Sequence record: PV261925.1
Length of the DNA: 64,000 bases
Strand: one strand, 5' to 3'
Each line of letters begins with the position of its first letter. Positions within the stretch are counted from its first letter, which is position 1. The translations under genes and the position numbers were made by a program. Shown in pieces: positions 10,829 through 63,868 of the stretch. The notes beneath the pieces were generated by a model. The model worked only from the letters and a program-made list of their open reading frames with translations, was not told the DNA's origin and did no database searches.

Positions 10829-11395
10829 CTAATATGGTTCAAAATAATTTAAAACTTCATCAATGTGAAACACATAGCACGGAGCTGTTGTGTATCCATA
10901 GTATAACATCTTTTGTATCCTATGGGAACCATCCATTGATCTATATCTCTTTCCAGTAATCGTAGTAGTACCATCTAATAAGATACCTGGATATGTAATA
11001 TCTGCTTCAATGACTCTACTACCACCACAACATGGACAATATAATGTATCTGAGGTAGCTCCATATTTCTCTTCCTGATACCATTGAATATCAGAAATCG
11101 GAACATCCAGTAGTCTATCTGAATTACGCATCCAATTCAATCTTCTTAATCGAATCCAATACCCTTCACCTACCTCTGGAATATGCCAATTGGTTTCGGA
11201 CTTGAATCCAGACTTATCATAATGTTGAAAACTATCACCCTCAAAGTAATGAGAAAATAATAACTCATCATACCATCCATCATAACCATATAACTTTAAT
11301 TCATTGTCTCGATAATCATCAATACAATAAATGTTACCAGGTATCAGTTCTGGATACTGTGAGAAACCATCATACAATACAAGTAATCCTTTCAT
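10829..11395 (-). CDS. Hypothetical protein with C-terminal ParB/sulfiredoxin-like domain
   Basis: YPGILL...YRSMDGSHRIQKML..GYTTAPCYVF resembles the ParB/Srx DGxHR motif; likely start ATG 11395 just after a terminator. Confidence 0.55.
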   Translation of the reverse strand: MKGLLVLYDGFSQYPELIPGNIYCIDDYRDNELKLYGYDGWYDELLFSHYFEGDSFQHYDKSGFKSETNWHIPEVGEGYWIRLRRLNWMRNSDRLLDVPISDIQWYQEEKYGATSDTLYCPCCGGSRVIEADITYPGILLDGTTTITGKRYRSMDGSHRIQKMLYYGYTTAPCYVFHIDEVLNYFEPY

Positions 11396-13412: not shown

Positions 13413-13515
13413 GATGATTGCCGTGGTTACACTATAGCGGACCTTTGGAGGTGAGTAATTTTGAAGTCCTCAGAGTGTTACAGATAAGTGATACTGATTT
13501 GACACGATTGGGGGG

Positions 13516-13544
13516 TTGACAGAATAGGAAAGGCCTGATAGACT
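13516..13544 (+). promoter_or_regulatory. Plus-strand sigma70-type promoter with no downstream ORF
   Basis: TTGACA-N17-TAGACT. Confidence 0.65.
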
Positions 13545-13730
13545 ACGGTCTTAGACGACTATAAGATCAGGCATTTAGCAGGGGGTTTATAGGCACTCAT
13601 GAGATACTAGCGAGACCCTTTGTAGCACATTACAAGACACTTTCGCAAACATTCGCATACATTTATAAAAGGCTTTAATATACAAAAAAAGGCAAATAGC
13701 AGTATTTATTCACCTTTTTGGAGGGTAATT

Positions 13731-13901
13731 TCATTGTAACTTAGTGAAAGGATTACATGTTGTTCTTGTTACTGGATCACCTAATTGTTCTCTTGATGGG
13801 ATGTCATCATGTGGTCTATATGCACTGATGATTGGTGATAACAAGAGAGCTAATCTTTCATCCATTTGTGTATGTCTGAGGTGATAGATGTGATGATTCA
13901 T
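13731..13901 (-). CDS. Small hypothetical protein (56 aa)
   Basis: Manual translation MNHHIYHLRHTQMDERLALLLSPIISAYRPHDDIPSREQLGDP... Confidence 0.5.
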   Translation of the reverse strand: MNHHIYHLRHTQMDERLALLLSPIISAYRPHDDIPSREQLGDPVTRTTCNPFTKLQ

Positions 13902-14215
13902 ACAGTAGTCATCTCCAGATAATCAGCTTCAGTTTGTAACTTCTTACCATTCCAAATATAGATCATTGGATCATCACAAGCACCATAATCTTCAACCTCT
14001 CCATCATCATTAAAAGTTACATAATCACGCAGTGAAACTACAACCATTGCGGTCTGATTACCAAGATGATTGATACATGCTTCGAGAGTGTAATCATCAA
14101 GATCACCACAAGCTGGAGTCCATTGAATATCAAGATCTTCGTTGCGATCTTCCTCTACAATATAACGGTGCTCATCTACAGAAAAGTCAAAGGCTTCGAT
14201 AGTGGCGAATTCCAT
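13898..14215 (-). CDS. Hypothetical acidic protein
   Basis: ORF track; first gene after repeat copy 2. Confidence 0.75.
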   Translation of the reverse strand: MEFATIEAFDFSVDEHRYIVEEDRNEDLDIQWTPACGDLDDYTLEACINHLGNQTAMVVVSLRDYVTFNDDGEVEDYGACDDPMIYIWNGKKLQTEADYLEMTTV

Positions 14216-14270
14216 GTGATTGTGTGTCTTATACTATAGTGGACGTTTGAAGGTGAGTAACTTTGTAGAG

Positions 14271-14429
14271 TTATGATTGACTTACTTTATTGATAACAAC
14301 TCGATGAGCAGGGTATCTCGCTTCAACTAATTGTCTTATAAAGTCTCTATCAGAACGATCAGATTGAAGAGAAAACTCATGCCTTCTCCCCTTGTCATCA
14401 TTCCAATAACCAGTGCAATTGTAGATCAT
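14271..14429 (-). CDS. Small hypothetical protein (52 aa)
   Basis: MIYNCTGYWNDDKGRRHEFSLQSDRSDRDFIRQLVEARYPAHRVVINKVSQS; ATGA overlap with the upstream gene. Confidence 0.7.
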   Translation of the reverse strand: MIYNCTGYWNDDKGRRHEFSLQSDRSDRDFIRQLVEARYPAHRVVINKVSQS

Positions 14430-14680
14430 TTGAAGAAATTAAGACGGTGGAGTTCAGTATAAGCGAAACGACGCATATTGTCATCCTCTGTTGTATGATA
14501 CAAATTGATCATACGCTGACAATAATCAGACCTCTTTGCGATCGGTGTGATACTTTGGCGTGAAGTGTAGCCAAGGTCATTGTTACCATTGGTCCGTACT
14601 TTAGGCCGGCCAAAGTTACCAGTGACATTACCTGTTGTTCTCAGTTTAGGCTTGATCTTTGAGAGATTTGAATCAGTCAT
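14426..14680 (-). CDS. Hypothetical protein
   Basis: ORF track 14426-14701; KLRTTGNVTGNFGRPK. Confidence 0.7.
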   Translation of the reverse strand: MTDSNLSKIKPKLRTTGNVTGNFGRPKVRTNGNNDLGYTSRQSITPIAKRSDYCQRMINLYHTTEDDNMRRFAYTELHRLNFFK

Positions 14681-14810
14681 GAACTTCGGAGTTGTCATCA
14701 ATTACAGTTACAATTTGTCCGTCTTGAGTTAGAATTTCATACTGAGTTTGAAATGATGAAATATCAGCCTTTCCAACAATAATAGCAGTGGTGAGGATAA
14801 ATTCAATCAT
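14673..14810 (-). CDS. Small hypothetical protein with hydrophobic N-terminus (45 aa)
   Basis: MIEFILTTAIIVGKADISSFQTQYEILTQDGQIVTVIDDNSEVHD. Confidence 0.6.
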   Translation of the reverse strand: MIEFILTTAIIVGKADISSFQTQYEILTQDGQIVTVIDDNSEVHD

Positions 14811-14871
14811 TAGTTAAACCTTTATACAAAAAGAGTAATAAAAAAATGAGAAGAATAAAACCTATGATCGA

Positions 14872-15135
14872 TCATAACTCCCATAGCATTTCATTCATCT
14901 CATTCACATCAATGTTAGGATCATCCCAACGAACACCATCACCAGTCTTGCAGAGATGTTTACCAATTTGTCCATCCATCATACAGCGGACAAACTTATC
15001 CCAAGGAGTCTCCAAACCCTCACGGTAGGTTACACATGCCTTGGCTGTGTTGTAAAGAAACTCATCATTGCCGATCCAAAGAGCAGCGTTCCAAGTTTCA
15101 TAATTAGACCAACCGTTGTAGGTAGAATCAGACAT
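14872..15135 (-). CDS. Phage hypothetical protein (YNGWSNYETW family)
   Basis: YNGWSNYETWNAALWIGNDE motif. Confidence 0.8.
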   Translation of the reverse strand: MSDSTYNGWSNYETWNAALWIGNDEFLYNTAKACVTYREGLETPWDKFVRCMMDGQIGKHLCKTGDGVRWDDPNIDVNEMNEMLWEL

Positions 15136-15274
15136 AGTAGAAAAAGAAATAAAGGTGGTGATTAAGTGTGGTTCAGAGAAACAAGTCAGAGAAGCAATCT
15201 AGAAGAGAGAAGTCTGAGCGAGAAGTCTGAACCCTTACACCTATGTGGACATTTCGAGGTGAGTAATTCTGTGG

Positions 15275-15607
15275 TCACACAATCTTCACTTGTTCAATCT
15301 TCTCTGATTGGAAAGATTGATCCTCATACTCAACCTCAGGAGAGAATGCGACTCCAATCATACCAAGAATGATAAGATTGACAAAGTTGATCACAAAAAC
15401 ACTTGGCACACCTAATACAAACCAAGGTGTCCATTTGCCTTGAAGACCACGAAGAACTCCCCAACTTGCAAGAGCTCCAATAGGCCCAGCGGTCAATAAT
15501 CCTGCAGTGGCAGCAACACCTTGTTCAAAACCTGAGGCGGTCTGACGTACAATAACTTGTTGCTGATTGTTGGTGATAGGATCAGGAGTGGTGATAGTCA
15601 TAATCAA
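15275..15607 (-). CDS. Hypothetical membrane protein
   Basis: Hydrophobic segments AATAGLLTAGPIGALASW and FVLGVPSVFVINFVNLIILGMIGVAF. Confidence 0.75.
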   Translation of the reverse strand: MIMTITTPDPITNNQQQVIVRQTASGFEQGVAATAGLLTAGPIGALASWGVLRGLQGKWTPWFVLGVPSVFVINFVNLIILGMIGVAFSPEVEYEDQSFQSEKIEQVKIV

Positions 15608-15638
15608 AAAGTGTTAGTTTAAGAAGAAAAGTTAGAAA

Positions 15639-15980
15639 TCAGAAGTGTTGTGGACAGATACGCTTTGCAGCGTTCAATACATCAAGATCACCCATGCTGA
15701 TGGTCATCACATAGTTTTCACCATTGCGATTGACACCATTGTTTGCCATCAGTGTCAGAGTGTCGCAATGTTTAGATGCCCAATTCTCAATCTCTGAAAC
15801 TTCATATTCAGCCTCAGTTTGATCACCAATAGTTTCAACTGGTGCAGGAACTTGAGCGATTGGTGTATTGTTGGCGACTTCAGATCGCTGGATGTCTTTA
15901 CCCATATCCATAACAATCAGTCCAGAAGTCAATGCCGAGACAACACACATTGCGCCGACTTGAATGTAGTTGAATTTCAT
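15639..15980 (-). CDS. Hypothetical protein with N-terminal membrane anchor
   Basis: ORF track 15639-16076; likely start MKFNYIQ at 15980. Confidence 0.7.
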   Translation of the reverse strand: MKFNYIQVGAMCVVSALTSGLIVMDMGKDIQRSEVANNTPIAQVPAPVETIGDQTEAEYEVSEIENWASKHCDTLTLMANNGVNRNGENYVMTISMGDLDVLNAAKRICPQHF

Positions 15981-15984
15981 AAAA

Positions 15985-16143
15985 TCAGTTACCATTGAGA
16001 AAATCATGTAATGCTTCCAAATACTCTTCTTTGGTCTCAAATGTGCGACCATAGATTGTCTTTGGAAATTCGCCAAGTTCGGCGGGTTTGTTGACAGGAT
16101 CTTTGCCCTGTGACTTGATTTGATCAGTGTAAGTGTTTCTCAT
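15985..16143 (-). CDS. Small hypothetical protein (52 aa)
   Basis: MRNTYTDQIKSQGKDPVNKPAELGEFPKTIYGRTFETKEEYLEALHDFLNGN; ATG immediately follows repeat copy 4. Confidence 0.65.
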   Translation of the reverse strand: MRNTYTDQIKSQGKDPVNKPAELGEFPKTIYGRTFETKEEYLEALHDFLNGN

Positions 16144-16178
16144 ACTATAGTGGACCTTTCGAGGTGAGTAATTCTGTG

Positions 16179-16379
16179 TCAGTCTAATCTCTTGAAATGA
16201 ACTGAATTAAACTGACCTGATTTGTTCTCTAATGTAATCTTAGTGTACCATGGTTGAATGTCAACACTCTCGACAACATAGCGATGACCAACTATCAAAT
16301 GAGATGGATAATCACTCGATGCCCATAACAACTGTTCATGAGTTGCTCCCTTAAATTCTACTATATCACCTGACTGCAT
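16179..16379 (-). CDS. Hypothetical protein
   Basis: ORF track; stop abuts repeat copy 4. Confidence 0.7.
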   Translation of the reverse strand: MQSGDIVEFKGATHEQLLWASSDYPSHLIVGHRYVVESVDIQPWYTKITLENKSGQFNSVHFKRLD

Positions 16380-16575
16380 TTATCATATCCTCCCACACTT
16401 CTTCGCCCATCATATCACTAATCTCCTCTTGCAAGTCAGTTTCATCATAATCTTTCATATTTGTTTCTATTTGTTCTGCTGCCCACTGACATAGAGTCTT
16501 GAGATCCATACCATCAACGATTAGCCAGGCATAGTCATTCTTTAGGTTATCAAGTTGTTCAGGTGTGAGTGTCAT
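16366..16575 (-). CDS. Hypothetical protein
   Basis: Likely start MTLTPEQL at 16575. Confidence 0.7.
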   Translation of the reverse strand: MTLTPEQLDNLKNDYAWLIVDGMDLKTLCQWAAEQIETNMKDYDETDLQEEISDMMGEEVWEDMINAVR

Positions 16576-16605
16576 TGGATCAGTGTAATATGCGACAAAA
16601 GACAT

Positions 16606-16627
16606 AAAAAAAGAGGGTAAAACCCTC
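16606..16627 (-). terminator. Rho-independent terminator
   Basis: GAGGGT-TTT-ACCCTC followed by T7. Confidence 0.75.
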
Positions 16628-16970
16628 AAGCAAAAACATAACCAGAATGGAAATCTTCAACGTTGTAGACTTTACCAGTTACTGAAGATTCGCCAATGAA
16701 CTTGCGAACATACCAGAGAAAGTCTTTCTGGAAAACACCTTCACCAGCGATACAATACTCTTCGCAAAGTGCATTGAGTCGTGATTTAGTGGTGTTAGAT
16801 TGCCAACCACCGTCAAAGATAGTCAGGCTAGTGTCATCAACCAGAGCAATTTTATTGCCGTGGAGATAAACAGTGGAAACACCCATGTTGGTGACAACTT
16901 CAGTGTTTCCAGATTTCCAGTTTTTGTTGCCGTTGATGGCTTCAATCATCTGGGATTCAATCTTACGCAT
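16626..16970 (-). CDS. Hypothetical protein
   Basis: MRKIESQMIEAINGNKNWKSGNTEV...LHGNKIA...TTKSRLNAL; first gene after repeat copy 5. Confidence 0.8.
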   Translation of the reverse strand: MRKIESQMIEAINGNKNWKSGNTEVVTNMGVSTVYLHGNKIALVDDTSLTIFDGGWQSNTTKSRLNALCEEYCIAGEGVFQKDFLWYVRKFIGESSVTGKVYNVEDFHSGYVFA

Positions 16971-17019
16971 GTGGTTTAGTGGTTCTTACACTATAGTGGA
17001 CATTTGGAGGTGAGTAATT

Positions 17020-17487
17020 CTAGTCTCTGGTAATTAACCACCAAAGTATACCACCAACGACAATTAAGGGAATGGTAATATACCAATATGCAATGGCAAC
17101 AAATACTATACCAAGTGCAAGTAGACCTCCTATGTCACCCATTGACATACTACTTCCACCAGAGTTAGTGTTATTGTAATTGACCTGATGTGTCCCACTA
17201 GATGTAATTGGAGTGGGTGTAGATGATGCCTTGATTCTTTCCTCCTGGTCTCTAAATCGTTGGTTTTGTTCTTCTATCTTTCTCTTGCGTTCTTCTTCTC
17301 TTCTATTATGTTCTTCACGTCTTCCAATATCATAATTATCGACCAATATCGCTGATTTAACATTGGCGCCAGGATAACGTGACCGTGCAACATCAAGTGC
17401 AGCATTGCCACTATTCACACCATCAATCAAAATATCTTGGTTGCGGTAGTTACGATCGCCGTAAATGTGAATTTTGTAAGTAGGCAT
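17020..17487 (-). CDS. Hypothetical membrane protein (coiled coil plus C-terminal TM segments)
   Basis: ORF track; TAG directly abuts repeat copy 5. Confidence 0.75.
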   Translation of the reverse strand: MPTYKIHIYGDRNYRNQDILIDGVNSGNAALDVARSRYPGANVKSAILVDNYDIGRREEHNRREEERKRKIEEQNQRFRDQEERIKASSTPTPITSSGTHQVNYNNTNSGGSSMSMGDIGGLLALGIVFVAIAYWYITIPLIVVGGILWWLITRD

Positions 17488-17515
17488 GAGATTGAAGAAT
17501 AAAATACTTTAACAA

Positions 17516-17626
17516 GTGGCCTTACATTGTATCAAGGTAACCACACCAAAACATGATACAAATGCCACACATTATGGGCCTTACATGAGTGTTGTAACCA
17601 CCACAGAAATTACACTCAATGCCCAT
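17516..17626 (-). ncRNA. Tandem pair of structured hairpins (GUAAG internal-loop scaffold), candidate ncRNA
   Basis: Unit B 17574-17626: ATGGGC-AT-TGAGTGT-19nt-ACACTCA-TGTAAG-GCCCAT. Unit A 17516-17568: GTGGC-AT-TTGTATCA-19nt-TGATACAA-TGTAAG-GCCAC. Stem sequences differ but pairing is kept. Confidence 0.65.
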
Positions 17627-17629
17627 CAA

Positions 17630-17812
17630 TCAAAAAGGATTAGTCCATTTGTGGTGTTGTTGTTTCGTAATCCTACCATCATCAAGTAAACTATCAACCA
17701 CATTTAGGAAGACAGCCCACTTCATGTCACGAGTGAAAGTAATACCTTCCTCTTTGCAATGAGTGTTCACAGTATTACGAACAACGCGTTGAACTTCAGT
17801 TTTTGTCATCAT
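17630..17812 (-). CDS. Hypothetical protein
   Basis: ORF track; LLDDGRITKQQH motif. Confidence 0.7.
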   Translation of the reverse strand: MMTKTEVQRVVRNTVNTHCKEEGITFTRDMKWAVFLNVVDSLLDDGRITKQQHHKWTNPF

Positions 17813-17866
17813 TTTTGTCCTTGTTTGGTTTAGTTGGTTTCGTCCAATAATCGCGGTAAATTGACA

Positions 17867-18019
17867 TCAATTAGTGGGAAAGTTACGACAGACGGCATCA
17901 CAAAGCATACGAATTACATCATCTTTATACTCAACTTCACCAAAGTTAGATTCAATAATACAATCAATGTCCTCCATGAGTTGTTCACGAGCGGTCAACA
18001 TTTCGAGTTGGTCCATCAT
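17867..18019 (-). CDS. Small acidic hypothetical protein (50 aa)
   Basis: MMDQLEMLTAREQLMEDIDCIIESNFGEVEYKDDVIRMLCDAVCRNFPTN. Confidence 0.65.
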   Translation of the reverse strand: MMDQLEMLTAREQLMEDIDCIIESNFGEVEYKDDVIRMLCDAVCRNFPTN

Positions 18020-18174
18020 TTAGAAAGAAGAAAACGACGTGCTTCGTAGGCTTGAAATTGTGAATTGAATGTGGCAATCTTGGTCATATCTTCACGCCAA
18101 TATAATGCCCATTTGTGTGACCCTATCACACCTTTAGCGATGATAGGGTTATCAATACCAAGTGGATAAGTCAT
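18016..18174 (-). CDS. Small hypothetical protein (52 aa)
   Basis: MTYPLGIDNPIIAKGVIGSHKWALYWRED...; ATGA overlaps on both sides. Confidence 0.65.
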   Translation of the reverse strand: MTYPLGIDNPIIAKGVIGSHKWALYWREDMTKIATFNSQFQAYEARRFLLSK

Positions 18175-18332
18175 TCTTCAATAACAGATTGGATTACAAA
18201 TTGTGGTTGATTTCGATTACAAGTTGCAATTGCTTCCTCTTTACTAGAAGCAATGTAACCTAGACAATCTCTCATTGTCCAACCATTAGCACGATGATGT
18301 TCACCGTAGATCAGAAACTTAGATTCTTTCAT
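18171..18332 (-). CDS. Hypothetical protein
   Basis: Likely start MKESKF at 18332. Confidence 0.65.
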   Translation of the reverse strand: MKESKFLIYGEHHRANGWTMRDCLGYIASSKEEAIATCNRNQPQFVIQSVIEE

Positions 18333-18336
18333 GTTA

Positions 18337-18564
18337 TCAACCTCCGTAGACTTCTTCAGCCATAGGTGTATCACTCATGCGATCGAGGTGATCCCAAAGT
18401 GTGTTTTTTTCACCAAACATTTCTTGGAAGAGATCAAGATCTTGACGATCATATTGATCTTTAACAATCCAAATCTCTTGTTCAATCCATGCAAGTTCTG
18501 CACGAGCTTTATCTAGTTTCTTACGAAGTTCGTAAAGCTTTTGGTTTCTTTCTGTGAGTGTCAT
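18337..18564 (-). CDS. Hypothetical coiled-coil protein
   Basis: ORF track; first gene after repeat copy 6. Confidence 0.7.
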   Translation of the reverse strand: MTLTERNQKLYELRKKLDKARAELAWIEQEIWIVKDQYDRQDLDLFQEMFGEKNTLWDHLDRMSDTPMAEEVYGG

Positions 18565-18614
18565 AATGATTCAGTGGTTACACTATAGTGGACATTTCGA
18601 GGTGAGTAATTCTG

Positions 18615-19205
18615 TCAGCCCAACAATACCTGAGGAAAGTATGGAGTCAGGTCAGAATCTACAATCTTATGTTCACAACTCACAAATTTCTTTCGTGATA
18701 CATTCTTGACATAGATCAGGTGGTTAATGTCAATATCTTTGTAATCTTGTGGTCCACGTTTACGAATAAGACCAAAGGCTTCGTTCTCTTCGCGAGTGGA
18801 AACAACGACCTTTGAAAGTTTATCAATGTCTGTCAAAAAATGAGTGATAAGATCATAAGAACGATCTTCCACAAACTTATCATAGTGATATGCAAATATG
18901 AACTTTGAACCACTACGAACACCGCCGAAGTGTTCTTTAGTCAAACTGTGTCCACCTTTGACCTTCATATCAATCACACTGGACAAAGTTTTGTCAGGAT
19001 ATTCACTCCACTTAATAAAAGCTTGAGGAGTGAGGAGAGCACCAGTGTCATCAATTTTATGAGAACCTGCCCAACAAATACCACCAGAAAGATCTTCTAC
19101 AACCTTGAACATGGTCTCACGGGTGTAGATATTGACCTGCTCATCTGTCAGAGACATGATGAGTTTGAGTTGATTAGTTAGGTATCTTTTAGTGGTGGCA
19201 GTCAT
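18615..19205 (-). CDS. Hypothetical protein (196 aa), single-gene cassette between repeat copies 7 and 6
   Basis: ORF track. Confidence 0.8.
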   Translation of the reverse strand: MTATTKRYLTNQLKLIMSLTDEQVNIYTRETMFKVVEDLSGGICWAGSHKIDDTGALLTPQAFIKWSEYPDKTLSSVIDMKVKGGHSLTKEHFGGVRSGSKFIFAYHYDKFVEDRSYDLITHFLTDIDKLSKVVVSTREENEAFGLIRKRGPQDYKDIDINHLIYVKNVSRKKFVSCEHKIVDSDLTPYFPQVLLG

Positions 19206-19250
19206 CGGTTTAATGTGGTTACTTAAGTGGACATTTAGAGGTGAGTAATT

Positions 19251-19454
19251 CTATTTGAGCTCAATTCGGTCAATCAAGACCATACCAAGGTCAAAATATA
19301 GATCATCATCAATGTCACCAAGCTTTTCACGGAGAGCATCACCAACCATGTCGGTCATCATCTCCATATAACGCTCATCTTCATAGATTTGATTGATAAT
19401 ATCCTCCTTCAATGCGTCGGCGAGTTTGGATACACATTTTGCAGAAAGTGCCAT
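19251..19454 (-). CDS. Hypothetical acidic protein
   Basis: ORF track; TAG abuts repeat copy 7. Confidence 0.75.
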   Translation of the reverse strand: MALSAKCVSKLADALKEDIINQIYEDERYMEMMTDMVGDALREKLGDIDDDLYFDLGMVLIDRIELK

Positions 19455-19455
19455 G

Positions 19456-19536
19456 TCAGTTGTTAGTGAGAATGTTTATGATTGTGATGAATAATGCACC
19501 ACACATAACGTAGTAGATGAAACGAAAAATAACCAT
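19456..19536 (-). CDS. Putative small membrane peptide (26 aa)
   Basis: MVIFRFIYYVMCGALFITIINILTNN; TAATG coupling with the upstream gene. Confidence 0.45.
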   Translation of the reverse strand: MVIFRFIYYVMCGALFITIINILTNN

Positions 19537-19865
19537 TATCGTAAGTAAAGATAACCACCTGCCCAATCAGCACGTTCATAACATTGTTCGCGTGATTCAA
19601 TCCTCAGAAGATTGTAACGAACACCTTTGGCTGGTGCTTTGAATGATGCAGGTTTGTAAACATCACCAGTCTTCTTATCAACAAAGGCATGAACACTGCG
19701 GGAGTTACCATCAGTCTCCATGATCAGTTTGTGATACTTACGACCAGATTCAATGTAAAACTTGTAACCATCAGACTTGTAATTGTTACGGCGAAGGAAA
19801 TCTTCCATCAACACACCGCAAAGAATGTTAGCGTGTTTCTCAACAATTTGTGTGGGAGTGATCAT
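19536..19865 (-). CDS. Hypothetical protein
   Basis: GRKYHKLI...SVHAFVDKKTGDVYKPASFKAPAKGVRYNL motif. Confidence 0.8.
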   Translation of the reverse strand: MITPTQIVEKHANILCGVLMEDFLRRNNYKSDGYKFYIESGRKYHKLIMETDGNSRSVHAFVDKKTGDVYKPASFKAPAKGVRYNLLRIESREQCYERADWAGGYLYLR

Positions 19866-19882
19866 AGCTTTGTGTGGTTACA

Positions 19883-20026
19883 CTATTGTGGACCTTTGGA
19901 GGTGAGTAATTCTGAAGACCGACGATTGATGGCGGCTACTTCTACACTACTACAAGGAATCAGAACCTTTTGATTTACCCACACAATCTTGCGAGTGTCA
20001 ATATCTGATGCGATGTTGTAAGTCAT
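19883..20026 (-). CDS. Small ORF (47 aa) reading through repeat copy 8
   Basis: MTYNIASDIDTRKIVWVNQKVLIPCSSVEVAAINRRSSELLTSKGPQ; ATGA overlap with the upstream gene. Confidence 0.5.
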   Translation of the reverse strand: MTYNIASDIDTRKIVWVNQKVLIPCSSVEVAAINRRSSELLTSKGPQ

Positions 20027-20343
20027 TCAAGTTCCTCAATAGGGTTGGCGTAAAGATCATTCTCTGTGGTCACATCAGTGAACACATCTTCATCATCATC
20101 AGCAAATAACAGATATAAAATCTCATCATTGTCCTTGACATTCCACTCTTGATAGAGAGAAATAATGTCGCCAGATACTTGTTCTTTCTTTTTATTCTTG
20201 TTTAATGATTTACCTAGTTTCTTAATACGTTTTGCATATGCTTCTTGCTGATCATTGGCAAGATATTCAACTCTATCAAGATTGAAGACAAACTTGTTAC
20301 CTTCAATCTCAAAGGTTTCGGAATTTGCGGTATCAAAATTCAT
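20023..20343 (-). CDS. Hypothetical protein
   Basis: ORF track. Confidence 0.7.
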   Translation of the reverse strand: MNFDTANSETFEIEGNKFVFNLDRVEYLANDQQEAYAKRIKKLGKSLNKNKKKEQVSGDIISLYQEWNVKDNDEILYLLFADDDEDVFTDVTTENDLYANPIEELE

Positions 20344-20388
20344 AATAATAATGTGGTTAATTCAATTGTATCTTATAAACTACCGATG

Positions 20389-20592
20389 TCAATCGGTAGT
20401 GGTTGCCTTACCCACATTAGATGGGCCTTTCCAAACCAAACCATCTTCTTCCCATTTACTGATAAAGGCACGACGAAGCATCATCAGTTCATCATATCGT
20501 GATTGTTGAGATGAAGTATAGTTGAAGTTTTGTACCCTCCAAGTTTTACGAAGTTCTTGAAGTTCACGGATGATTTGAGAAGAATTGTTCAT
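20389..20592 (-). CDS. Hypothetical protein
   Basis: ORF track. Confidence 0.7.
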   Translation of the reverse strand: MNNSSQIIRELQELRKTWRVQNFNYTSSQQSRYDELMMLRRAFISKWEEDGLVWKGPSNVGKATTTD

Positions 20593-20633
20593 GATGTTGT
20601 TCTTAGATTAAGTAAAATAAGTTTAGGTTTATG

Positions 20634-20891
20634 TCATTCAATACGAGTGATTACAACGTAATTAGAATCATCATCAAATTTAGGGGGATGGATCGTCCTC
20701 GTCACTTTGTAGCCCGTTTTCTTCAATGCACTAGGAATATCTGGGCCCCTGTAGTCTTCACAATAATCATCACAGCGAAGAATGAATGACATTCCAATAT
20801 CTAGTTGTTGCCATGGGTGTTTCTGTTTACGACCCTTGCTTGGAGAATGAAATAGTTCTTCAATTTGATGGGGGGTGTAGATTTCGGACAT
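20634..20891 (-). CDS. Hypothetical protein (K-H/Y-P-W/F..L.IG.SF type, possibly DNA-binding)
   Basis: GRKQKHPWQQLDIGMSF motif; first gene after repeat copy 9. Confidence 0.7.
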   Translation of the reverse strand: MSEIYTPHQIEELFHSPSKGRKQKHPWQQLDIGMSFILRCDDYCEDYRGPDIPSALKKTGYKVTRTIHPPKFDDDSNYVVITRIE

Positions 20892-20935
20892 GATTAGACG
20901 TGATTACAATAGAGTGGACGTTTGGAGGTGAGTAA

Positions 20936-21487
20936 TTATGAACCGAGACAGAATTGTCTGAGTTTCCGAGTAATAGAGGGTGCAGTGATGTCTTCCGACA
21001 CAACATATGCCTCTAATTCTTCCAGAATAGTATCTTCATGAAGACCCTTGGCTTTCAGTCGCGAACGTAACTGAGCAAGACGTTCTTCATCATAAGATGG
21101 AGACAAAGACAAGAATTTAGCAAGTTCTTCTTCATTGAACATCGTTGTAGTTTTACCATCAGCAATATAACCACTTGCACAATCTTGGATTACATGATGT
21201 GCCTCATGTCGCAGTGTGTTGTAGTCATTCTCGGTCCATTTGTATTGTTTATTTGAACCTGGAATCATCTTATCTTGACAGATAACTAACATTCCAGAAT
21301 AAGGATAGTAAATACCATCCATTTTCTTTCTGTCATTACAATGATTGAGATGATTGACCAATGTAACTACACCAAGGTCTTGCAAAGTGTTCCACAATTC
21401 ATTATGGTCATCATGAATGTCAGCCTTGGCAATACCAGGAGTGAGAACTGCGGTTGCTGCGAGAAGAGAAAGAAATAGTTTTTTCAT
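20936..21487 (-). CDS. Secreted HExxH zinc-metallopeptidase-like protein
   Basis: Signal peptide MKKLFLSLLAATAVLTPGIAKA; LRHEAHHVIQDC. Confidence 0.6.
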   Translation of the reverse strand: MKKLFLSLLAATAVLTPGIAKADIHDDHNELWNTLQDLGVVTLVNHLNHCNDRKKMDGIYYPYSGMLVICQDKMIPGSNKQYKWTENDYNTLRHEAHHVIQDCASGYIADGKTTTMFNEEELAKFLSLSPSYDEERLAQLRSRLKAKGLHEDTILEELEAYVVSEDITAPSITRKLRQFCLGS

Positions 21488-21492
21488 GTTAA

Positions 21493-21744
21493 TCAGAAGT
21501 CAGGTCCAAGAATTTCCATAAGATCAGCAGGATCAGTACTGCCGAGATAAGTCTCAGTAAAGAGAATTGCTAGTTCTCTACTACCAAACTCAATCTCTAC
21601 ATTATCCCAGATCCTGTCATTATATACTTTGACAGTGATAGGTTGAACACCCGATTCTTCAATTGTTTCAGAAATATTATAATAAATGTCATCACCATCA
21701 CTACAATCAAAGTCATAAGTGACTTTTACAGTTGACATAATCAT
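21493..21744 (-). CDS. Hypothetical acidic protein
   Basis: Likely start MIMSTVKV at 21744. Confidence 0.65.
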   Translation of the reverse strand: MIMSTVKVTYDFDCSDGDDIYYNISETIEESGVQPITVKVYNDRIWDNVEIEFGSRELAILFTETYLGSTDPADLMEILGPDF

Positions 21745-21941
21745 TTTGATTCCTCCAGAGTAATAGTACGATACTGATTGACAATGGTCTCTAGTTCCAT
21801 AACACAATGTTGCATTGTGGCACGAGAGTAACCAGTAGCATAAGGATAACCCTGATCAGGGTTATTCAACGCATCATGTGATACATTCACTCCATCTTGA
21901 AGACTTTCGATGATTGTGATTAGTTTGGTGTCGATGTTCAT
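21741..21941 (-). CDS. Hypothetical protein
   Basis: Likely start MNIDTKL at 21941; GYPYATGYSR motif. Confidence 0.7.
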   Translation of the reverse strand: MNIDTKLITIIESLQDGVNVSHDALNNPDQGYPYATGYSRATMQHCVMELETIVNQYRTITLEESK

Positions 21942-21951
21942 GATAGGTAAT

Positions 21952-21990
21952 AAAAAACCGCTGTAGGGGATCAGAGACACCTTACAGCGG
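21952..21990 (-). terminator. Rho-independent terminator
   Basis: CCGCTGTA...TACAGCGG followed by T6. Confidence 0.75.
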
Positions 21991-21997
21991 AGAATAG

Positions 21998-22207
21998 TCA
22001 GACAGTGGTCTTAGGACCAAACTCACGTTGATAAGAATCTTTCACATACTCAACAGTTTGTTGAATGAAAGGCTTGACATAATCAACGAGTTGTTTTACA
22101 TCTTCAATGAGCTTGTTAGTCTCATACTGATGAATCTCCCAACGTACTTTGATGTCGGCAAGATACTGTTGACGAGTAATAAGAACTTGAGGAGTGGTTT
22201 GAGTCAT
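21998..22207 (-). CDS. Hypothetical protein
   Basis: ORF track; first gene after repeat copy 10. Confidence 0.75.
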   Translation of the reverse strand: MTQTTPQVLITRQQYLADIKVRWEIHQYETNKLIEDVKQLVDYVKPFIQQTVEYVKDSYQREFGPKTTV

Positions 22208-22257
22208 AGAAGTGTGGTCTCTACACTATAGGGGACATTTGGAGGTGAGTAATTCTG

Positions 22258-22461
22258 TCACCTCTTCTTTTTCTTGAGTTTGTTAATCAATGTCATCGCA
22301 GATTGTCTGTTACGACATACTTTAACCACCACACCATTGTGAACAACCACAAGTTTAGTTGTTGAACCAACCAGTGGAATTGCAGCCAGATAACCATCAC
22401 CCACAATGATAGGTAATGTTCCTGGTTTACAATCAAGGATGTGTGAGTTTGTGTAATGCAT
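22258..22461 (-). CDS. Hypothetical protein
   Basis: ORF track; stop abuts repeat copy 10. Confidence 0.7.
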   Translation of the reverse strand: MHYTNSHILDCKPGTLPIIVGDGYLAAIPLVGSTTKLVVVHNGVVVKVCRNRQSAMTLINKLKKKKR

Positions 22462-22915
22462 TTAGATATACTTGGTGGGCTTCTTCAATAGTATCATATA
22501 TCCCCAAATATTCAGTTTTACCTTCATGTGCAATACGAGAGTAATATCTACCACTATGTGCGGTCGATACACCTCTGACACCTAATTCATTATTGTTTCT
22601 TACTTTAGTATTGTAATTATTCTGTGTTTGGTCAACTGCTCGTAAGTTTTCTATTCTGTTATTACTTTTGTTTCTATCAATATGGTCTATTTGTTGTTCC
22701 TGCTCTAAGTCACCATAATGATACTGATACACCAATCTGTGCTTTAAATATATCTTCTTATCCACAGATATTTGATAATATCCAGTGTGATGTTTAGTCC
22801 CTGCAATAGAACCTGCAGGTTGTCTTCCCCTACATTTTTTGTAGATAAGTTCACCATCTTGGTAGGCGAAAAGTTCCTGTAACCTACCCTGTGAAGGGAG
22901 TTGATAATTTCTCAT
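22433..22915 (-). CDS. HNH homing endonuclease with C-terminal AP2 DNA-binding domain
   Basis: YLKHRLVY...IDHIDRNKSNNRIENLR (HNH_3) and GVRGVS..GRYYSRI..YLGIYDTIEEA (AP2). Confidence 0.9.
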   Translation of the reverse strand: MRNYQLPSQGRLQELFAYQDGELIYKKCRGRQPAGSIAGTKHHTGYYQISVDKKIYLKHRLVYQYHYGDLEQEQQIDHIDRNKSNNRIENLRAVDQTQNNYNTKVRNNNELGVRGVSTAHSGRYYSRIAHEGKTEYLGIYDTIEEAHQVYLNALHKLTHP

Positions 22916-23010
22916 GTGTGTCTTGGCGATGACATTACTATTTAGAATTTTATCATAATGTGGGACTTACGTCAATTTACCCGCCAAGACACACTGACTG
23001 CCCACATTAT
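22916..23010 (-). promoter_or_regulatory. Structured leader (GUAAG scaffold hairpin E1 + late promoter + loop-complementary RBS region) of the HNH gene
   Basis: ATAATGTGGG/CCCACATTAT stem; GTCA/TGAC inner stem; loop GTGTGTCTTGGCG (22982-22994) is the exact complement of the 13 nt before the ATG (22916-22928); TAAATA at 22939-22944. Confidence 0.75.
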
Positions 23011-24188
23011 TATTTACGAGTTACACTGTCAAGCATTTCTCCCTTCTCAAACACAATATCAACACAACGCTGGAGAGACTTTTGAGTGGAAAGTCCTACC
23101 TGATTGTAGACAGGGACGCAGAGCATACCGTAGGTTTTAGTAGAAGAACCAACCCTAATGACACGTCCGACAGTTTGAAGAAGCTCAATACTGTCCATGT
23201 TACGAAGGAAGATAACCGCCTCAAGTTCAGACACGTTGATGCCTTCAGACAGAATAGAACGGTGAAGGACAACAAATTTCTTTGACTTGTCACGACCCCA
23301 TGCATTCAGAGTATTGAAAAACTCTTCACGAGATACTTTCTGACCATCGATAACAGCACCAGTCTTGGCGGTGATATACAGATAAGAGTAACCACGTTCT
23401 GTCAACTGATCAGCGAAATCAGTCATGAACAGGTTCTGTAACTGTCGTGTGGTCTTAACACAAACCAGAATCTTCTTGATGTCAATCTGGTCAATAGATG
23501 CGAGGACATTGTTACCCTCAAGATGAGGAGTGAGAGACTTTTTGTCAATCTTATCCATCTCAATCACCTTGACCTTAGGTGGAAGAATGTAACCATTCTG
23601 AACCAGATCAGGTGCAGACACACGTGCAATCACTTGACCATAAGTCTCAGTCCAGTTCATGCCTGGTTTCTTCACAGTCACACTGGTTTTACGAGTTGCA
23701 GTGAAGTAGTAACAACGATCTGCATGCTTACTGAAATACTCAGTGGGACCGTAGAAGTTACGTTGAACAGAGTTATGTGCCTCGTCAAAGTAAATCGTAT
23801 CTACAGCAATACCAGACTCTTGAACACGATGAAGAGAGTGATATGTGGTGAAGATAATAACGTGTTCACGCATAGTGTGACACATATCAACAAATAGTTT
23901 GATACGTTCAGACTTAGTGGTACTGAAATGTTGTGTCTCTCCACTATGAACATGGAGAACATTTGCATTGGTGATATGTTCCAGATACTCTGATGACAGT
24001 TGTTCTGCCAACAGAATACGAGGAGCGACAACAACAATAGTGCGAGGAACTTTTATCTCAAATCGTCTCACTGCGTCCATGATAGCGATAAGAGTCTTGC
24101 CGCCACCAGTAGGAACAATGATTTGACCGATAGAATTATTACGAAGAGCGTAAACAGCGTCCTGTTGATGAGGGCGGAGTTTGATCAT
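23010..24188 (-). CDS. Superfamily 2 (DEAH-type) helicase
   Basis: LRPHQ, PTGGGKT (motif I), DEAH (II), TAT (III), LSEGINV (V), QTVGRVIR (VI). Confidence 0.92.
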   Translation of the reverse strand: MIKLRPHQQDAVYALRNNSIGQIIVPTGGGKTLIAIMDAVRRFEIKVPRTIVVVAPRILLAEQLSSEYLEHITNANVLHVHSGETQHFSTTKSERIKLFVDMCHTMREHVIIFTTYHSLHRVQESGIAVDTIYFDEAHNSVQRNFYGPTEYFSKHADRCYYFTATRKTSVTVKKPGMNWTETYGQVIARVSAPDLVQNGYILPPKVKVIEMDKIDKKSLTPHLEGNNVLASIDQIDIKKILVCVKTTRQLQNLFMTDFADQLTERGYSYLYITAKTGAVIDGQKVSREEFFNTLNAWGRDKSKKFVVLHRSILSEGINVSELEAVIFLRNMDSIELLQTVGRVIRVGSSTKTYGMLCVPVYNQVGLSTQKSLQRCVDIVFEKGEMLDSVTRK

Positions 24189-24231
24189 TTATGTGGTGTA
24201 TGTAATAGTGTGGACGTTTGGAGGTGAGTAA

Positions 24232-25113
24232 TTATGAACCGTATCCATTATGGAAGTTAGCATATGCAAACTCGGTACGATCTACCAGTTTAACACATCC
24301 ATAGGTGTTAGAGTGGAAAACATATCCTTCACCACTACATTTCTTACCATTAGGAAGATAAGATTGTGGTGCGTCGGTGACAATCAGACTGTCCATAATA
24401 TCCAGTTTGATTTCCATCACAAACTGATACAGATTAGTGAGATGTTGACAACCAAGAATGTCAGTCAGGGTTGCGTCATCAATATACTGACCAGATTTGA
24501 TGAGTGCGTTGATAGCAGTCTTAGCCTTAGCAGCTTCCTTATCAGTCAGAAACTTGATACCCTTAGGGTTAATCTTAGGGACAGATCCTTGGGGAGGAAT
24601 ACGATCAACAGAAGGTTGCACCCACTTGACCATAGTGGTGTCTTCAAATGTTTCCATCAAAGGTGAACACACATTCTTCCACATTTCCTCGTGAACGTCA
24701 ACAGCTGTGTGAGGAGCGATGACAAGTTTCTGGTCAATTGCTTCGTCAAAGACATACGTCAGAGTGTTCTGAGTAAACACATCAGTACGACCGAAACCAA
24801 GCCAATCACCCCAGTAAATCTTCTCGGTACGAGGAAGATACTTGAAACAATGAGACAGAATATCTACAACTTCGATTTGATGACCAAAATGAGTGAAGAT
24901 GTCGTCAATAGAGTAACAAAGACGAACTTTCTTCTTGTTAAATGCAGCTTTTGTACACACAAAAAACTTACCATTGGCAGGGTTAGTACCCCAAACCAAC
25001 GACATTCCATCCATCTTCATAGAGATGTGTGCGTGATCATAAAGAAGATCAAACACTGACATATCTCCAGTCAAAATGCAGTCTTCGGGATGTTCCAGGT
25101 GAGTTTGTGTCAT
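24232..25113 (-). CDS. Hypothetical protein with ligase-like covalent nucleotidyltransferase motifs
   Basis: SMKMDG (KxDG), EGYVF and VKLVDR in the expected order; THLEHPED N-terminus. Confidence 0.6.
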   Translation of the reverse strand: MTQTHLEHPEDCILTGDMSVFDLLYDHAHISMKMDGMSLVWGTNPANGKFFVCTKAAFNKKKVRLCYSIDDIFTHFGHQIEVVDILSHCFKYLPRTEKIYWGDWLGFGRTDVFTQNTLTYVFDEAIDQKLVIAPHTAVDVHEEMWKNVCSPLMETFEDTTMVKWVQPSVDRIPPQGSVPKINPKGIKFLTDKEAAKAKTAINALIKSGQYIDDATLTDILGCQHLTNLYQFVMEIKLDIMDSLIVTDAPQSYLPNGKKCSGEGYVFHSNTYGCVKLVDRTEFAYANFHNGYGS

Positions 25114-25164
25114 AATATGGTGTGGTCTCGTACTATAGATGACCTTTCAAGGTGAGTAATTCTG

Positions 25165-38097: not shown

Positions 38098-39447
38098 TCA
38101 GGCAGTGGATGAAGCGGTCATTGAGTGCTGTGAACCTGGTACTGCATTTTGAATAATGACTTCATAGAAGAATGACACACCATCATCAGCTGTTGGATTA
38201 GAAATATCAATACTATATCCATTTCCGCCAGAATTATTAAATGCATAGTGACTTGCTGCTGAGTAAGTATATGCAAAAGGTGTGGTTACTGTTGCACTAT
38301 CAGAGGATGTACCACTGGAGTTTGTAAATACTCTACACATAAACTGTGCAGCAGGGTGATTGTTTGATGTATTAGATGCTGTCCAAGAACCTGTAGCATT
38401 GATTGTAATCATTGCACTAGTTCTATCAGTTCCTACAAAAGTAAATCTAGTCAGTTGTCCAGAATTCAATGTATCACTGACATAATACTTTTTGATTGCA
38501 CCACCAGCAATCTCCTCATATCTATAGACTTGGTTTTGTGTAATAGAACTATCGCCTAACTGTAAAGTGGAACCAGTTGATACATTGATGTTACCACCAT
38601 TAGTGATGCTTAGTCTTTCATTATTTCCATTTGTATAGAATTTGATTTCTCCTGAAGGTGAGCCTGAATAAGCACCTGCTATATTTAAATGATCATCACC
38701 CCAAATGTAATGAATTCTATCATCAGCAAGTTTTTTTAATTCAATCTGTCCACCACTAATATTGGCAAGAGAAAGATTTGCGTAACCAGCTGATGAAACT
38801 GGTATGTCAGTTCCAATACCAATATTGCCGGCTGTAGTAACTCTGAGTGCCTCAGTTCCACCAGCAGATATTGCAACTTGACCAGCAGCAGGGAAGAATA
38901 CGCCAGTCGTTGTATCAACACCAACTAAACCAGGTGTTGCTTCTGTACCATAACCAACTGATACTGCTGCACCAACAGGAACTGCAAGACCATAAGGGAA
39001 CTTAGGTGCCTTTACACCACTCTTATCTGTAATATTATCTACTCTTACTTTACCTTCACCACTAGCAAGAATACCAGGAGTATCTACATCTGTACCAATA
39101 CCTAAAATGTCAGGAATAAAGTCATCACCATCGGCTACAATCAGGTCTGCATCACCTTGTAGGACAATGTTGGTATATTGTGTATATGCTGCTGAAGCAG
39201 ATGCTGGTGGGTCTACAGTGATGGTAGAACCAATGGTCAGGTTTGCATCAGTATAATATATCTTATTCAACGGACTGTTTAGGTCATCTGGTAACAATGA
39301 AGTACCAAGGCCACCAGGAGTACCAGTCAGGTTTGAGCCGTCACCATAGTATTCAATTGCAGTTACTACCCCCAACCTGACATTAACAGGATTTTGAGGG
39401 TTAGTAACCGCAGAACCAAAACCAGCAAGATTACGAGCTCTTGACAT
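38098..39447 (-). CDS. Tail fibre-like virion protein
   Basis: GNIGIGT repeats, T/G-rich. Confidence 0.75.
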   Translation of the reverse strand: MSRARNLAGFGSAVTNPQNPVNVRLGVVTAIEYYGDGSNLTGTPGGLGTSLLPDDLNSPLNKIYYTDANLTIGSTITVDPPASASAAYTQYTNIVLQGDADLIVADGDDFIPDILGIGTDVDTPGILASGEGKVRVDNITDKSGVKAPKFPYGLAVPVGAAVSVGYGTEATPGLVGVDTTTGVFFPAAGQVAISAGGTEALRVTTAGNIGIGTDIPVSSAGYANLSLANISGGQIELKKLADDRIHYIWGDDHLNIAGAYSGSPSGEIKFYTNGNNERLSITNGGNINVSTGSTLQLGDSSITQNQVYRYEEIAGGAIKKYYVSDTLNSGQLTRFTFVGTDRTSAMITINATGSWTASNTSNNHPAAQFMCRVFTNSSGTSSDSATVTTPFAYTYSAASHYAFNNSGGNGYSIDISNPTADDGVSFFYEVIIQNAVPGSQHSMTASSTA

Positions 39448-63720: not shown

Positions 63721-63777
63721 GTATGTTTCGTATTAGGTAGTATTCTAACAACGAATAATAAAACACTCAATTCATAA

Positions 63778-63862
63778 TAGGAACGGGGAGACTTGAACTC
63801 CCACGGACATAATGCCCAACTGATTTTAAGTCAGGTGCGTCTACCGATTCCGCCACGCTCCC
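63778..63862 (-). tRNA. trnL: tRNA-Leu, anticodon UAA
   Basis: GGGAGCG/CGTTCCT acceptor stem, TGGCGGAATCGGTAGACG D-arm, CTTAAAA anticodon loop, long variable arm, GTTCAAGTC T-loop; CCA not encoded. Confidence 0.95.
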
Positions 63863-63868
63863 AAAAAA

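Follow-up and report, generated by a model that had tools for sequence, protein, structure and literature searches.

Tandem hairpins of Synechococcus phage RB11-B belong to a phage-only RNA family and expose loops complementary to early gene leaders

Two hairpins with loops antisense to early leaders

The last 64 kb of the record of Synechococcus phage RB11-B (PV261925.1), hereafter the window, hold two tandem hairpins in a 142-nt intergenic stretch on the minus strand, between genes encoding 60 and 155 amino acids (aa). RB11-B is a T4-like cyanomyovirus with a genome of 210 kb and has RN05-S and S-B05 as close relatives; nearly all genes of the window lie on the minus strand and encode mostly small hypothetical proteins. 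Both hairpins display a loop that is complementary to a motif in the leaders of early genes, and loop and motif change together in two related lineages. The hairpins are members of a structured RNA family that was found only in phages and is absent from Rfam 15 and from the literature searched. From these sequence comparisons, we tentatively suggest that the two hairpins act as a trans-acting antisense RNA, which would dampen or shut off the early cassettes.

An earlier sequence-only reading had proposed the tandem pair, which was confirmed on the gene (minus) strand with an extent slightly wider than claimed (17626 to 17574 and 17568 to 17516). The hairpins and their loops are as follows, with scores from a covariance model, R1, that was built from 14 members of the family:

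17574 to 17626, minus strand: hairpin unit B, fold -16.5 kcal/mol; R1 60.0 bits, E 4e-12
17592 to 17610, minus strand: loop of unit B, 19 nt, AAUUUCUGUGGUGGUUACA; its 3' half GGUGGUUACA complements (U)GUAACCACC
17516 to 17568, minus strand: hairpin unit A, fold -15.2 kcal/mol; R1 58.8 bits, E 8e-12
17535 to 17553, minus strand: loop of unit A, 19 nt; GGUGUGGUUAC complements GUAACCACACC

Unit B consists of the base stem AUGGGC/GCCCAU, a CAU/AUG pairing, a bulged U, the upper stem GAGUGU/ACACUC, the loop and a 3' bulge UAAGG. In unit A, the base stem is GUGG/CCAC and the upper stem UGUAUCA/UGAUACA, with the loop UGUUUUGGUGUGGUUACCU and again CAU/AUG, the bulged U and the 3' bulge UAAGG. The two loops have GUGGUUAC in common, the complement of which is GUAACCAC. 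Within this, the octamer GTGGTTAC is found at 17594-17601 and 17537-17544, and its complement GTAACCAC follows the -10 box in four promoter copies, just as the sequence-only reading had stated.

What that reading had described as repeats is a family of early promoters of ~40 nt on the minus strand, with the consensus TTACTCACCTCCAAATGTCCAC-TATAGT. Their positions are:

13458 to 25159, minus strand: early region with 12 promoter copies, each with an ATG 15-19 nt after it
25159, 24231, 22252, 20935, 19909, 19248, 18609, 17017, 16171, 15266, 14260 and 13458, minus strand: starts of the 28-nt promoter cores
19874 to 19909, minus strand: early promoter copy, TTACTCACCTCCAAAGGTCCACAATAGT then GTAACCAC, 16-nt leader, ATG at 19865
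19215 to 19248, minus strand: early promoter copy with the -10 box TTAAGT, overlapping GTAACCAC
18574 to 18609, minus strand: early promoter copy, then GTAACCAC
13423 to 13458, minus strand: early promoter copy, then GTAACCAC
16982 to 17017, minus strand: early promoter copy, then GTAAGAACCAC; downstream edge of a swapped cassette (see below)

Exact copies of GTAACCAC thus follow the -10 box in 4 of the 12 promoters (plus-strand positions 13423, 18574, 19215 and 19874), and most of the others carry GTAA or ATAA and then ..ACCAC... For the leader of the copy at 19874 to 19909, the predicted duplex with loop A is -20.1 kcal/mol. Early leaders are short (~10-17 nt), AC-rich and devoid of a Shine-Dalgarno (SD) sequence, and they contain an (A)ACCAC motif (e.g. 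at the gene starts 13224, 15135, 18174 and 20343). AACCAC occurs 5.9 times per kb in early leaders vs 0.43 times per kb genome-wide, a ~14-fold enrichment. Such leaders suggest an unusual translation-initiation signal.

The promoter spacer (13458-25159, minus strand) is itself highly conserved and contains CACCTCC and CACTATAG. The former is the anti-SD sequence of 16S rRNA, and the latter equals the core sequence of promoters of the T7 type. Within read-through transcripts, CACCTCC would form an anti-SD-like string ahead of genes that lack an SD sequence.

The complementarity exceeds chance expectation

The octamer was counted 13 times in the window, where 2.4 copies were expected, and none of 100 shuffles reached 13. 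Seven of the 13 copies are located inside coding sequence, six of these in large genes, and are unrelated. The coding copies of GTGGTTAC/GTAACCAC lie at 38282, 46852 and 53926 on the plus strand and at 23388, 40033, 45600 and 54831 on the minus strand; three of them share a ..actggGTAACCACa.. pattern, which may reflect a repeated peptide motif in a structural protein.

Predicted duplexes of the window loops with the 3' flanks of the promoters were much stronger than those with random windows of the same strand or those formed by shuffled loops, and the energies observed with the full flanks were reached by 0 of 300 shuffled loops. Between 58 and 67% of the promoter 3' flanks in the window fell in the best 5% of background duplex energies, as did 70-100% in contigs of the L009 type. 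Within the family, only the loop class found in early regions is enriched against its own leaders. By a rough estimate, the chance of a perfect 8-mer anywhere in the repeat is ~1%. The sequence-only reading had asked whether the match merely mirrors the generic AC-rich composition of the leaders. The match exceeds it: composition-preserving shuffles of the 33 annotated early leaders reached the observed counts in 0-4% of trials, and generic AC-richness therefore does not explain the match.

These statistics, together with the co-variation described below, support the core of the earlier proposal, i.e. that the loops are antisense to the leaders of early cassettes, while several of its details fared less well. 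The alignment of 21 nt (81%) between unit A and the leader and start codon of its promoter copy 8 uses bases of the stem, and many inverted pairs in the same 10 kb are as good. A resemblance of unit B to the other flank of the repeat is real for the copy at 15261-15275 and inconsistent across promoters and contigs: the complement of the 5' half of loop B (ACAGAAAUU) was in the top 5% of background against the upstream flanks of 50% of the window promoters and 44% of those in contig L435, and of only 0-20% in four related contigs with the same loop. Pairing over the start codon of copy 8 and an RNA bridging both ends of a cassette, as also envisaged, either do not exceed chance or lack conservation.

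Loop and leader co-vary in related phages

The most informative result came from co-variation of loop and leader. L054 is a clear member of the family (46 bits) with the loop UUUUGUGGUAUUU, which contains GUGGUAUUU. Four consecutive genes adjoining this hairpin carry AAAUACCAC(A) 2-12 nt before their ATG; one copy of the motif in L054 is well inside a 5' untranslated region (UTR), 15 nt after the -10 box. Perfect loop-leader matches of 10, 9 and 8 nt were obtained, a result reached by at most 0.4% of random-window sets and by 1.8-5% of shuffled loops, where the figure of 1.8% refers to shuffled loops reaching the count of 9-nt matches. In L426, one of three hairpins reads GGUUAU for GGUUAC, and ATAACCAC, not GTAACCAC, follows six of its seven promoters. 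Perfect matches of 9 nt or more were found for four leaders, a number reached by 0.05% of shuffled loops.

The sequence-only reading had named co-evolution of loop and leader across phages as a check; L054 and L426 are supporting cases, and the other lineages vary in neither partner. Loops are moreover kept on changing stems (see below). Taken together, the co-variation in the two lineages and this retention of loops argue that the loop is selected for pairing with the leader motif.

The L426 contig (8.1 kb) holds its three family hairpins within 3 kb, as a tandem of unit A and a degenerate unit B plus a separate copy resembling that of L009. The number of hairpins and the way they are arranged thus differ from lineage to lineage.

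A structured RNA family of marine phages

Scanning IMG/VR and the JGI metagenomes for the hairpin pattern yielded at least 38 distinct sequences with the same frame. It comprises a base stem of 4-6 bp ending in GG, C-A-U, one bulged U, an upper stem of 6-11 bp, a displayed single-stranded loop of 13-19 nt and, on the return side, the second strand of the upper stem, (A)UG, a 5-nt bulge UAAGR, and CC with the rest of the base stem, in all 45-55 nt. The U bulge and UAAGR are the invariant unpaired bases. R1 retrieved 38 copies in the loci searched, and in their alignment 97.4% of cells are paired, with double compensatory changes in 9 of 13 pairs. The covariation score was 0.512, compared with 0.150 for shuffles (0 of 500 reached the observed value) and at most 0.105 with the partners slid. 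The alignment was fitted to the model and so favours the structure; the raw sequences still show at least 12 different, perfectly pairing upper stems. Non-Watson-Crick pairs are G.U on the gene strand only (e.g. in L016, L010, L121 and L139), so the structure is taken to be that of the sense RNA. The loop is kept while stems change: unit B of the window, L009 and L015 share a loop on different stems.

An initial structure with a GGC/GCC stem and an AUU/AUGUAA internal loop was dropped, as many members read GACC. Pairing of CAU with AUG next to a UAAGR bulge agrees better with the GACC for GGCC, with a GUG in phage Bellamy and with a paired deletion in L015_B. A kink-turn, which calls for a bulge of 3 nt and then tandem sheared G.A pairs, was excluded: the bulge of 5 nt (UAAGR) lies on the 3' strand with Watson-Crick pairs on both sides, and, as read from the sequences, unit A and most other members cannot form G.A pairs. 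Neither a loop E motif, a tetraloop-receptor nor a start-stop (AUG-UAA) mini-ORF had supporting features, and NUG variants in place of AUG are accounted for by base pairing.

No Rfam 15 family was obtained for the hairpin from the window, from the type-2 locus or from five further loci at the gathering score, and no relevant one at E values as high as 10; covariance models of Rfam families including manA, wcaG, 6S, YrlA and abiF did not match the hairpins. BLAST of the hairpin region against GenBank phages matched only the RB11-B/RN05-S/S-B05 group, plus Bellamy for type 2. A type-2-specific pattern had one true match in 185,579 species genomes, a phage-like contig of 578 nt in a metagenome-assembled genome; a host origin of the hairpin was rejected on this result. 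In the literature on cyanophages, no described equivalent was found, and only the promoter-early stem-loop (PeSL), manA, wcaG, abiF and CfrI turned up.

Members of the family were found in early regions, heading tRNA operons, in the 5' UTRs of genes for sugar modification, and in the form of terminator-like units. Four groups of loops can be told apart. The early-region class, which includes the window, has loops with ..UGUGGUGGUUAC.. or ..GGUGUGGUUACC.. and sits after a stop codon, singly or in tandem; the tandem arrangement is seen in several lineages, and in relatives an early promoter usually follows 15-25 nt on. The ACC-repeat class, ACCACCACC(ACC)UCC, fills the spacer between tRNA-Arg(TCT) and tRNA-Gly(TCC), also in Bellamy, and stands ahead of protein genes in L068 and L231. 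U-rich loops come from marine phage contigs that are rich in AT; the hairpin there follows a gene, its base stem is AGGGG/CCCCU, and it has a U-tract, like a terminator. The fourth group holds assorted other loops.

Processing of the tRNAs would set free those members that lie between tRNA-Arg and tRNA-Gly. In L193, L194, L259 and L313, a TTGACA-17-TATGAT promoter lies between tRNA-Arg and the hairpin, in the first three directly upstream of the ACC-repeat hairpin, so that hairpin and tRNA-Gly start a new transcription unit within the tRNA cluster. In L345, L264 and L231, the ACC-repeat hairpin comes with a promoter as well as a U-tract and so has the look of a free-standing RNA gene of ~55 nt; in L345 (contig CETH01159708.1, minus strand), a TTGACA-17-TATAAT promoter precedes the hairpin, and the base stem runs straight into a U7 tail. 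The scaffold can therefore exist as a free-standing small RNA. Targets for the ACC-repeat loop, GGUGGUGG strings, were found only within coding sequence, and the early leaders of Bellamy are not complementary to it. The ACC-repeat class displays the ACCAC motif in its sense version, which may point to a common regulatory theme.

Proposed role of the hairpins

We propose that both hairpins represent one small structured RNA module, which is transcribed together with the early genes of the minus strand. Its scaffold would hold out a loop antisense to (U)(G/A)UAACCAC(A/C)(C), a motif ahead of most early cassettes and some internal early genes. As early transcripts build up, the hairpin RNA, within the long transcript or after processing, would pair in trans, loop to linear leader RNA that lacks an SD sequence. 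Target leaders would be those in read-through polycistronic RNA and, partly, those in promoter-initiated RNA. Pairing 5-15 nt from the start codon could block initiation or make a double-stranded cleavage site, and the outcome would be feedback on, or shut-off of, early gene expression. Action in trans, pairing in vivo and the direction of the effect are what we infer.

Several results weigh against this proposal. Folding z-scores are modest (-1.7 for each window hairpin), and neither window hairpin comes with its own promoter or terminator. A scan for the sigma70 consensus gave chance-level matches, two of them inside the hairpins, to which we attach no weight; neither hairpin was called in a terminator scan of the sequence, there being no T-run after either and loops of 19 nt. 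Co-variation comes from two lineages, and in L426 a C has become U, a base that can still pair with G by wobble. None of the scaffold's other loop classes is complementary to its local leaders, so antisense action is not a property of the whole family. The leaders of a genome are paralogous copies of one repeat, and the comparison is therefore of one motif with one loop per genome.

A further objection concerns the start of transcription. With a -35 box TTACTC, a 16-nt spacer and a -10 box TATAGT, the canonical +1 is the A of CCAC, and GUAACC, i.e. six of the eight complementary bases, would therefore be missing from promoter-initiated mRNA. Counted from this +1, the signal is weaker: 2% of shuffled loops reach the observed value, and the median duplexes are -9.4 and -11.05 kcal/mol, compared with background means of -8.1 and -8.6 kcal/mol. 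Promoter-initiated mRNAs may thus carry only ACCAC and what follows. The full motif is certainly present in read-through RNA; 12 co-oriented promoters are spread over 12 kb, and the terminator scan found one clear canonical terminator between 13000 and 23000. AACCACA(C) also precedes internal genes that lack a promoter (starts 15135, 18174 and 20343), and at these the motif must therefore be transcribed.

A broader proposal, which we regard as rather improbable, is that of a programmable phage small RNA, in which a scaffold restricted to marine phages would carry exchangeable loops as seeds. In phages of the S-B05/RB11-B type, the loop would be antisense to the shared early leader motif and provide an RNA-based shut-off of early genes; in those of the Bellamy type, the sense ACC-repeat from the head of the tRNA operon could serve as a decoy for whatever reads ACCAC leaders.

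To our knowledge, this phage group lacks the AsiA and MotA switch of T4, and the timing of early genes in T4-like cyanophages is poorly understood. If the antisense proposal is true, a small RNA that reads a motif common to a dozen early cassettes would give the phage a compact, directly testable switch at the post-transcriptional level. Apart from function, the hairpins represent an apparently undescribed structured RNA family of marine phages with strong covariation, invariant bulges and swappable loops.

A cassette boundary at the hairpins

The surroundings of the hairpins were compared with those in related phages, with the following features on either side:

17630 to 17812, minus strand: upstream 60-aa gene, phrog_336; stop codon a few bases 5' of unit B
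17020 to 17487, minus strand: downstream 155-aa gene, no family match, no early promoter of its own
17511 to 17516, minus strand: point at which homology with RN05-S and S-B05 breaks off, just 3' of unit A

The hairpins are 100% identical in RB11-B, RN05-S and S-B05, and the flanking genes 98-99%. RB11-B remains identical to the other two through both hairpins, diverges right after GGCCACUUGU and regains homology at the next promoter, near 17022. In place of the 155-aa gene, RN05-S and S-B05 carry an early promoter and a 205-aa gene (ATGGCT...). The edges of the swapped cassette are thus the 3' end of the hairpin and the next promoter. A stop codon, the hairpin and, 15-25 nt on, an early promoter follow each other in RN05-S, S-B05, L009, L015, L099, L328, L422 and L426; in the window itself, no promoter follows unit A. 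On this sequence evidence, the 3' edge of the hairpin is a cassette-exchange boundary, apparently a second role beside the proposed pairing. The replacement of the 155-aa gene in the closest relatives with identical hairpins also speaks against the idea that the GGCAT arms pair with ATGCC at the start of this gene (17487), a match of only 5 nt. Homologues of the phrog_336 type precede the hairpin in L099 and L015 and occur without it in L142 and L143, which rules out the upstream gene as an obligate partner.

These observations raise the alternative that the hairpins are boundary elements of the PeSL type, which we consider unlikely. Such an element would sit at the 3' end of an early cassette as a 3'-end, processing or stabilising structure or a weak attenuator and, with the adjacent promoter, form a linker for recombination of modules; the loop would be complementary to the promoter as a by-product of having arisen from an inverted piece of promoter. 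The arrangement in the eight relatives and the cassette swap, bounded exactly by the hairpin's 3' end and the next promoter, speak for this explanation. GGGG/CCCC stems of PeSLs and GGGC/GCCC inverted repeats at T4 deletion ends are on record (PMC2839356). L198, L205 and L241, all with U-rich loops, and L345 carry a U-tract right after the base stem and have the form of intrinsic terminators, for which the criteria were a G+C-rich stem, 3-8 nt in the loop and a T-run 0-2 nt from the stem. The window hairpins, however, have no U-tract and loops of 19 nt in a phage that has a canonical terminator of its own at 16613-16627, and the same scaffold lies between two tRNA genes, where termination would be counter-productive. 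The whole RB11-B genome contains only two copies, both at this locus, vs at least 12 promoters, and two copies in 210 kb therefore point to a specific locus and not to a generic cassette terminator. Given loops kept on changing stems and the co-variation in L054, a by-product would also need independent captures inside the same scaffold.

The terminator at 16613-16627 (minus strand, GAGGGTTTTACCCTC then T7) lies inside the early region, and another precedes the gene start at 11395.

Other explanations of the complementarity

In T4, the genes e, soc and 49 are precedents for translation that depends in cis on the promoter used. By analogy, the loop in a read-through transcript could pair with the leader of the next gene, ~70-80 nt downstream. 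The promoter immediately 3' of the hairpin carries a perfect GTAACCAC or ATAACCAC in L009, L015 and L426, and the motif straddles the start site, so that only read-through RNA would hold all of it. We nevertheless judge a cis element very unlikely: the window has neither a promoter nor a complementary leader 3' of the hairpins, the adjacent promoter in RN05-S and S-B05 is followed by ACAACCAAC, which allows only ~5 pairs, and the best matches in L054 are with upstream genes.

RNA can also act on the polymerase itself, as 6S RNA does by titrating it and as the put RNA of HK022 does, in which tandem hairpins of early transcripts modify the polymerase in cis. The loop equals the template strand of the early promoter from about -7 to +5, and a decoy that titrates RNA polymerase or a promoter factor, or that modifies polymerase in cis, would fit a complementarity centred on promoter positions -7 to +2 and not on the transcribed leader. 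An invariant unpaired U bulge and UAAGR, typical of protein or tertiary contact, and tandem hairpins in several lineages are in line with such a decoy. That the hairpins have neither a -10-like element nor an internal bubble, that the motif in L054 lies well beyond the -10 box, that internal leaders without a promoter carry it too, and that no Rfam 6S model matches make it highly improbable.

The least probable explanation is coincidence, i.e. that the loop and the promoter +1 motif are conserved for separate reasons and complementary by accident: there is one independent motif per genome, the search of the sequence-only reading was post hoc and other loop classes have no leader complementarity, but independent matches of different sequence occur in L054 and L426, and every control was exceeded.

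Comparison with known systems

The C4 RNA of phages P1 and P7 is a phage antisense RNA that is cut from the same transcript as its target. P22 sar and lambda OOP are listed as phage antisense RNAs (PMC12197685). As proposed for the RB11-B hairpins, these are small phage-encoded hairpin RNAs in which an exposed sequence pairs with the leader or initiation region of a phage mRNA. They differ in belonging to temperate phages, where each controls a single gene in immunity or antirepressor control; here the phage is lytic and T4-like, and the candidate target is a motif of at least 12 cassettes. No similarity in sequence or structure was found between them and the RB11-B hairpins.

Structured RNAs of cyanophages in Rfam include manA, wcaG, PhotoRC-II, glnA and an abiF match in S-CREM1 (PMC2864571, PMC9964418). 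They share with the hairpins that they are conserved noncoding structures of T4-like cyanophages, some beside tRNA genes, whereas the hairpin is much smaller (45-55 nt), single, fitted with an exchangeable loop and without a match in Rfam. RB11-B has a manA RNA (RF01745, 82.5 bits, E 7e-21) in the 213-nt spacer between tRNA-Arg(TCT) and tRNA-Thr, at 64012-64222 of the record (14012-14222 of L125, minus strand), the position where other cyanomyoviruses carry the ACC-loop hairpin. Conservation of this spacer amounts to 100% in S-B43, S-H68 and S-B05; in ~45 ACG-2014f genomes the figure is 76%. A lone tRNA-Leu(TAA) lies at 63777-63863 of the window (minus strand), far from the main tRNA cluster (62-64 kb of the record).

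Some members of the family (L198, L205 and L345) combine hairpin and U-tract, placed after a gene or behind a promoter of their own, and in this they resemble intrinsic terminators and the small RNAs that derive from 3' UTRs or from tRNA spacers. The window copies differ in the missing U-tract and in a loop of 19 nt, far larger than terminator loops.

A close parallel in genome organization is the PeSL cassettes of T4-type phages (Arbiol et al. 2010, PMC2839356; Comeau et al. 2014, PMC4122927). In these, stem-loops accompany most cassettes and were shown to terminate transcription (PMC2839356); PeSLs were judged sparse in cyanophage S-PM2 (PMC4503421). The window hairpins depart from this pattern in copy number (2 vs 12 promoters, 13458-25159) and in lacking terminator form, if PeSL stem-loops are taken to be intrinsic terminators, with a large conserved loop, a conserved asymmetric bulge and no U-tract, and their scaffold extends to tRNA operons, to phages of other types and to free-standing units. 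Common to both are the mosaic breakpoints at the element and the GGG(C)/(G)CCC base stem and, in relatives though not in the window, the stem-loop directly upstream of a strong, repeated sigma70-like early promoter in a hyperplastic region of small genes of unknown function. The breakpoint after unit A recalls the PeSL-mediated modular shuffling of T4-type coliphages (PMC2839356), and a cassette-exchange boundary at the hairpin would link a regulatory RNA to modular genome shuffling.

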